Of a stretch of 64,000 nt of DNA, positions 53,043-53,634 are shown in pieces. This stretch comes from Utricularia gibba (lineage: Eukaryota; Plantae; Magnoliophyta), in the NCBI GenBank assembly GCA_002189035.1, contig NEEC01000009.1, positions 992,001 to 1,056,000 on the forward strand, in the 5' to 3' direction. The notes under the pieces are model-generated. The model had not been told where the DNA came from. It made no database searches and worked only from the letters and a program-made list of their open reading frames with translations. Position numbers and translations under genes: made by a program. Within the stretch, counting starts at the first letter, position 1. Every line of letters starts with the position of its first letter.

Positions 53043-53634
53043 GATATTTTCAGTTGGCCGCGGCAGCAGGGGGAGGACGCGGCCGGCGGTATGTCCGTGA
53101 AAGTGGTGACTGACGAGAAGGTGGAGGTTCTCCGGAAGCAGATTGCAGTGAACGCCGTCATTTGCGAGCAGCTCGCGAGTTGCGTAAATGCGACATGTGA
53201 TATGCTCTGGTTGAATCGCCAAATGAGAAGAGTCAGAAGTGGACACTGAAATTGATCTCCGAATGAGAAGAACACTAAGCCTCAAAGTTTGTCTTCATCT
53301 GCAGAGGATCTGTCCTTTTAGAACCCTTGACTTCATTCTGTGGATGCTCTCAATGGGAAGACAGAATCTATTTTATATCTAGCTGCATATCAAAGTTTGT
53401 TGGCATCGGCAAATGCCCTTCTATGGCATCCAGTCCGAGTAACTACATAGCCTTAGCCTTATCCCAGAAAATTTTTCCATCCTGTTCTGTTTTCTTTTTG
53501 TTTAAACTCATACTTTCCCAGACTTCTGTTCTCCTTATGCTTTTACAAACGCAGGAATAGGAAAGATAATGGGGAAGATGGAAATTCATAGGAACTATAG
53601 TCATTTTCAACAAGATGGCTGTAGCATGGACTGA
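53043..53634 (+). pseudogene. WOX13: WOX13-like relic lacking the homeodomain
   Basis: N-terminal motif [30 protein letters not shown], then almost directly post-homeodomain-like ESEVDTEID(S)PNEKNTKP...AEDLSF*NP* (stops at 53319 and 53328), QMPFYG, and last exon GIGKIMGKMEIHRNYSHFQQDGCSMD* (53555-53634). Confidence 0.8.

Follow-up and report, generated by a model that had tools for sequence, protein, structure and literature searches.

The window analysed here, a 64-kb stretch of Utricularia gibba DNA, carries approximately one gene per 3.5 kb, in an order that includes CDPK and ARO and, further along, CYCB2, C2H2, a WOX13 remnant, PP2C and SRPK. Three-frame translation and alignment of 53043–53634 on the + strand recovered, in this order, the WOX13 motif of exon 1, an ESExE segment, the tail of exon 2, intron 2 and exon 3. 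An earlier sequence-only reading had reported the WOX13 motif, a post-homeodomain segment and the last exon in the same succession, and all three lie where it had placed them.

Two genomic WOX13 loci, L001 and L002, were taken as references, and the remnant was compared with intact WOX13 exon by exon. The intact gene in L002 (6001–8558) has its exon 1 at 6001–6237, ending in HDLAG, followed by an intron 1 of 807 nt and an exon 2 that begins at 7045 and encodes GVRMGNPYCDP (the YxDpl motif), the homeodomain, KRKQQVSAPNNAESEVETEVDSPN, CFQNPEISS and GQMSFYGSMLSNP; a phase-1 intron 2 then precedes exon 3 (RMDHLIGKMENPGNYNAYMHPDDYNMSG). Aligned as DNA to L002 exons 1, 2 and 3, the remnant scored z = 18.0, 11.0 and 7.6 against shuffles. 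When WOX13-motif proteins were searched against the 64-kb window by tblastn, they matched at 53043–53174 with E = 1e-9 to 6e-11, bearing out the earlier assignment of the locus to WOX13. In a full profile-free protein search with the open reading frame (ORF), 23 of the 25 matches carried the WOX13 (MOG) motif in the form G(M/L)(F/Y)..(M/L)HK. Two matches from the profile-free search, P0001 and P0004, were spurious hits to repeat proteins and were rejected. Pfam returned no family and nothing relevant for the pieces of the remnant, and Rfam returned no family for the locus. The MOG motif is 39 amino acids long and lies upstream of the homeodomain (Deveaux et al. 2008, PMC2584047). In angiosperms the YxDpl motif sits between these two, and the ESExE motif comes directly after the homeodomain. 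Judged by its sequence, the locus is a WOX13 remnant, and we consider this identification secure. It resembles the WOX13 orthologous group (AtWOX13, At4g35550) in its MOG motif, its ESExE motif, a C-terminal end of the GKME..Y..MSG type, the position of the 3′ intron and the order of these elements. It is unlike that group in lacking the homeodomain, the YxDpl motif, intron 1 and the start codon, and in carrying frameshifts and stops. From these losses, the remnant is predicted to be incapable of binding DNA or of making a full WOX13 protein.

The 5′-most piece (53043–53090, +) is an N-terminal coding remnant that matches MEWxKQQ..GG (tblastn with P0024 and P0002, and translation) and has no in-frame ATG. 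The WOX13 motif remnant follows at 53085–53189 (+), with 53085–53174 in frame (30 residues) and then ELRK, aligned with VELHK, beyond a 1-nt deletion near 53176. The motif remnant was delimited by the tblastn E-values given above and by DNA alignments to exon 1 of L001 and L002 (z of 16–18). In the translation of 52960–53700, the motif ORF occupies the frame of 52962 and runs on into ASCVNATCDMLWLNRQMRRVRSGH before ending at TGA 53247–53249. Read from ATG 53091, this is the 52-codon ORF (53091–53249, +) that had been proposed to encode a microprotein; it is present as described, and consists of 28 motif codons followed by approximately 24–25 frameshifted or junction codons.

The post-homeodomain remnant of exon 2 lies at 53219–53438 (+) and reads, in pieces, PN-EESEVDTEID (the ESExE motif), SPNEKNTK, AEDLSF-stop-NP-stop-LHS and QMPFYGIQS. 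EESEVDTEID is read from 53227 in the frame of 52960, which differs from the frame of the WOX13 motif, and its ESEVDTEID portion (53230–53256) aligns at the DNA level with ESEVETEVD of L002. The adjoining segment at 53256–53369 lies in the frame of 52962 and reads SPNEKNTKPQSLSSSAEDLSF, a stop (TAG 53319–53321), NP, a second stop (TGA 53328–53330) and LHSVDALNGKTES; QMPFYGIQSE is again in the frame of 52960. Intron 2 (53439–53554, +) extends from GTAACT to CGCAG at the position of the phase-1 intron 2 of L002. Preceded by a pyrimidine tract and CAG (53552–53554), the exon-3 remnant (53555–53634, +) reads IMGKMEIHRNYSHFQQDGCSMD up to TGA 53632–53634, and its end, IGKIMGKMEIHRNYSHFQQDGCSMD, matches MDHLIGKMENPGNYNAYMHPDDYNMSG, each followed by a stop.

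The central part of the gene is missing. Exon-1 homology reaches 53189 and exon-2 homology restarts at 53219, where CCAAATGA-GAAGAGTCAGAAGTGGACACTGAA aligns with CCAAACAATGCTGAATCTGAAGTGGAGACAGAG (i.e. PNNAESEVETE), so that a junction of just 29 nt (53190–53218, assigned to neither strand) occupies the place of the conserved first intron. Measured against L002, what has gone is 28 nt of the exon-1 tail, all of intron 1 and approximately 258 nt of exon 2, the last being the counterpart of L002 7045–7302 with the YxDpl motif, the homeodomain and KRKQ. Comparison of the homeodomain part of L002 with 52600–53990 on both strands gave nothing real, and the sole homeodomain in the window is that of a WUS-type gene (20968–21165). 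Homology to the intact WOX13 genes thus agrees with the earlier view that intron 1 and the whole homeodomain are gone. That reading had also put the distance between CEQL and ESEVDTE at about 60 nt; the excision is real, but the homology reaches further inwards from both sides and leaves only the 29-nt junction. The junction showed no score above shuffles against the exon-1 tails or the homeodomain ends (WFQNRR..) of L001 and L002. By-eye matches of TGGTTGAATCGCC with TGGTTCCAGAATCG and of GATATGCTCTGG with GATCTTGCTGG likewise found no support. A 17-nt direct repeat, ATCGCCAAATGAGAAGA and ATCTCCGAATGAGAAGA, lies either side of the ESExE remnant at 53215–53231 and 53255–53271, and its copies are 16/17 identical in the X4/X8 allele (T to G at 53258). 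Templated repair at the deletion junction may have inserted this repeat.

A gap of this kind could also be an assembly collapse, with the homeodomain and intron 1 present in the real genome and dropped by the assembler. Errors of a related sort do occur elsewhere in the window, since X1 and X8 each carry an extra base at 51572 and at 51790. However, four runs, each from a different study (X1, X3, X4 and X8), contributed contigs that were placed on the window, and these separately assembled sets, which include RNA-like runs and a diverged accession, all bridge 53170–53235, the span for which an assembly gap had been a concern. X1, which may be the source sample of the window, crosses it without inserted sequence in a contig over 51400–54182. 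The RNA origin of X3 and X4 is a guess, prompted by their splice joints and by the lack of any contig over 51400–53004; both cross the span, X3 with a contig (53035–53514) that has zero differences over its length and X4 with one (53005–54093) that has four substitutions and no gaps in all. X8, a DNA run from another study and an accession diverged by approximately 3%, crosses it in a 7.6-kb contig over 52461–54845, and none of the differences listed for X8 is an inserted sequence at the junction. As the contigs of all four runs bridge this span without extra sequence, assembly collapse is excluded, and we give it a negligible probability. The junction and the coding lesions are identical in the X1, X3 and X4 contigs, for which no indel errors were reported inside the remnant; therefore, its frameshifts and stops are genuine.

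Differences between the window and these contigs also lie upstream. The bases that X1 and X8 both add, a G after 51572 and a C after 51790, concern the C2H2 zinc-finger gene (51587–52087, +), whose frame is probably broken by single-base indel errors of the window assembly. In the spacer between C2H2 and the remnant, X8 has a structural polymorphism in which 84 bases at 52376–52461 are swapped for 97 others.

Since the gene is present only in parts, we considered whether it might have arrived as a fragment rather than decayed in place, either captured by a transposon of the Pack-MULE or Helitron type or retro-copied from an aberrant splice form. The left edge of the deletion lies at most approximately 30 nt from the exon-1 donor, and a cDNA with a cryptic splice after the homeodomain could fit this, although the fit is not significant. 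A search of the flanks found no terminal inverted repeats, the order and orientation of the exons are native, and intron 2 is kept, which shows that the remnant is not a processed copy. In addition, the gene order of the window (CDPK, ARO, CYCB2, C2H2, WOX13, SRPK) presumably matches the Arabidopsis chromosome 4 block around At4g35550 (WOX13), as the sequence-only reading had also proposed, which would argue against capture. Together these observations leave an origin by capture or retro-copying only a very slight chance.

At a distance of 32 kb from the WOX13 remnant, the window has a WUS/WOX-type homeodomain gene (20878–21378, +; Pfam Homeodomain, E = 5e-14), which presumably matches the duplicated block on Arabidopsis chromosome 2. 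In Arabidopsis, WUS presumably lies on one duplicate of the block and WOX13 on the other, and the window may show their linkage before duplication. The best protein matches of the PP2C gene are from Lamiales (Paulownia, 88%; Genlisea, 87%; Olea; Henckelia). No WOX13 was found within 10 kb of the PP2C orthologues in Paulownia (L003) or in plant contigs from JGI metagenomes (L004–L007). The latter are plant nuclear contigs in which a PP2C 87% identical to that of the window has RPL11 approximately 0.8 kb downstream, and they possibly represent a homeologue or a relative of the window region. Plant contigs with PP2C and RPL11 recur in about 50 metagenome contigs, i.e. compact plant DNA in metagenome samples. 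In L002, WOX13 adjoins PIG-H, a gene that the window does not contain.

What is left of the WOX13 coding sequence is heavily damaged. Its reading frame contains at least four frameshifts, with at least three in the exon-2 remnant alone, and two stops. TAG 53319–53321 aligns with the Gln of CFQNPE, and the second stop (TGA 53328–53330), as aligned, may involve an indel rather than a pure substitution. The earlier claim that both stops are substitutions therefore holds for the first, which is genuine in the contigs, and is doubtful for the second. The ancestral frame 5′ of 53091 is open for 43 codons with zero ATG. FSWPRQQ in this region aligns with the MEWxKQQ start of relatives, and so ATG 53091 corresponds to the internal Met of GGMFVKV. 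With at least four frameshifts, two stops and no in-frame ATG upstream, the sequence-only reading was right to describe a locus in decay.

The region 5′ of the motif also contains a second ORF, of 30 codons, in another frame (53021–53113, +). It overlaps ATG 53091, and its own ATG 53021 has a stronger context (gggATGg) than ATG 53091 (ggtATGt). X8 has lost 1 nt from the G-run at 53069–53073, which joins ATG 53021 to the motif ORF in a single frame of 75 codons; the frame 5′ of the motif is thus polymorphic between accessions. Within the motif, the remnant departs from 24 motif copies of 23 cluster representatives at three residues that are invariant among them (M to V, Q to K and Y to N), and two more remnant residues are never seen among those 24 copies. 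These changes affect 5 of the 26 core positions, which is the top of the 0–5 range in intact relatives and by count does not make the remnant an outlier.

The sequence-only reading had raised the 52-codon ORF as a candidate homeodomain-less microprotein; such a product (75 codons in the X8 allele), if translated, would use its WOX13 motif to titrate the partners of full-length WOX13. KNATM and LITTLE ZIPPER are precedents for microProteins that titrate partners within their own families. X1, X3 and X4 all carry the ORF unbroken, the RNA-like contigs cover it from 53005 (X4) or 53035 (X3), the X8 deletion places it behind the strong-context ATG 53021, and 25 of its 30 motif residues are amino acids found in intact relatives. 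However, the native start is gone and the ORF begins at an internal Met; the upstream ORF that starts at ATG 53021 overlaps it in the window allele, and the frame of this region varies between accessions. Three invariant motif residues are replaced, and a frameshift truncates the motif and adds the approximately 24–25 junk codons. The RNA-like contigs are strandless and leave intron 2 unspliced, and any transcript that the ORF shared with a spliced intron further downstream (54093–54249, discussed below) would be expected to be a target of nonsense-mediated decay.

Counterparts of this ORF were also sought. No protein of 52–166 aa emerged as a relative when the 95-aa ORF was used in a word search, an exact-sequence look-up of the 52-aa product returned no record, and a literature search found no paper tying WOX13 to microproteins, which counts against the proposal, and none on Utricularia and WOX13. 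Short protein matches were considered as a homeodomain-less WOX13 family and rejected; they are first-exon ORFs that run past DLAG into non-WOX13 sequence, consistent with read-through of exon 1 into intron 1. On paper, the remnant is like the plant microProteins KNATM, LITTLE ZIPPER and miP1a/b, in that a transcription factor family motif which does not bind DNA survives in a short ORF. The genes for those microProteins are intact, expressed and conserved, and their products have been shown to bind partners, whereas the remnant ORF appears to have arisen through decay; its invariant residues are altered, the searches found no conserved relatives of it, and its translation is putative. Beyond an open 52-codon frame and ambiguous RNA coverage, nothing specific favours the microprotein proposal; it is not supported, and we regard it as very improbable.

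The contigs that cover the remnant raise a separate question, of which strand is transcribed. The X3 and X4 contigs start sharply at 53035 and 53005, respectively, just 5′ of the coding start of the remnant. The X4 contig is continuous from 53005 to 54093, through the remnant including intron 2, which has plausible GT..AG sites and is unspliced in both RNA-like runs, with no joint reported. The contigs carry no strand, and one contig over two genes is not evidence for a single transcript. PP2C, which lies on the − strand and converges on the remnant, has its stop at 53995 (last coding exon, 53995–54547), and three AATAAA signals lie on the − strand at 52909, 52920 and 52945 (stretch 52909–52950). 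Based on these two features, the coverage could represent an approximately 1-kb 3′ end of PP2C. Some + strand RNA does exist, however. A splice joint from 54089 to 54247 corresponds to an intron of 157 nt (54093–54249; CAG/GTGAGA..CCCACAG/G) that sits within the conserved last coding exon of PP2C, and spliced depth was approximately twice the unspliced depth in two studies (20.4 versus 10.5, and 5.6 versus 3.68). Because this joint can be read on the + strand only, it demonstrates RNA antisense to PP2C.

One source of such RNA would be the old WOX13 promoter, if it still fires and drives a non-coding + strand RNA through the remnant into PP2C as a natural antisense transcript. The + only joint inside the PP2C exon, the continuity of the contigs from 53005 to 54093 and an A/T-rich stretch at 52890–52950 that could serve as a promoter are in keeping with this. 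The same stretch carries the three AATAAA signals on its − strand, though, which fits a long PP2C 3′ end. Moreover, intron 2 of the remnant is unspliced but the downstream + intron is spliced, a mild argument that the + strand RNA starts 3′ of the remnant, beyond 53555. On balance, a live WOX13 promoter is unlikely. Still less likely is that the remnant is not silent, i.e. that promoter-driven + strand RNA yields either a WOX13-motif peptide of 52–75 residues that interferes with WOX13 partners or a spliced antisense RNA acting on PP2C. If this were true, a transcription factor gene would have taken on a new regulatory role as it died, and the locus would matter more if stranded data traced an antisense RNA or a peptide back to the old promoter. 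A separate X4 contig of 462 nt (depth 312) agrees with the window at 30 of the 32 bases of 53610–53641, beyond which its sequence is different; an expressed WOX13 paralogue may have its 3′ end here.

In our assessment, the locus is very probably a deletion-eroded, non-functional WOX13 pseudogene that is decaying in place. We propose that one or a few deletions took everything from the last part of exon 1 through intron 1 and the YxDpl motif to the far end of the homeodomain, and left the 29-nt junction. The ancestral frame has no start codon left, small indels have shifted it at least four times, and two stops have arisen. The remnant is most likely the redundant copy of a duplicated gene that is being lost by fractionation in a compact, deletion-prone genome. 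RNA over it would then be a by-product, either of the long 3′ end or read-through of convergent PP2C or of residual promoter activity. Two observations weigh against this reading: the RNA-like contigs begin abruptly close to the 5′ end of the remnant, and the intron at 54093–54249 attests + strand transcription in the vicinity. We infer that the remnant has no function, and we assume that a second, intact WOX13 lies elsewhere in the genome.

The proposed history has parallels. Fractionation remnants after whole-genome duplication are alike in combining an internal deletion with small indels among intact neighbours in a compact genome; here, the retained partner is assumed. Within the family, PpaWOX03, a ‘possible pseudogene’, is similarly a WOX13-clade locus without a clade-defining feature that was judged non-functional (PMC2584047). 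In PpaWOX03 it is the WOX13 motif and the conserved intron that are absent (PMC2584047), whereas the Utricularia remnant keeps the motif and loses the homeodomain.

For annotation, the locus should be named a WOX13 pseudogene, neither a gene nor a small-protein gene. Land plants as a whole retain the WOX13 clade (Deveaux et al. 2008, PMC2584047), and if Utricularia had no intact WOX13 paralogue, the remnant would record a lineage-specific loss of this clade and not simple fractionation. As a fractionation remnant, it offers a clear example of how duplicate genes are lost in compact plant genomes, through an internal deletion and then small indels.
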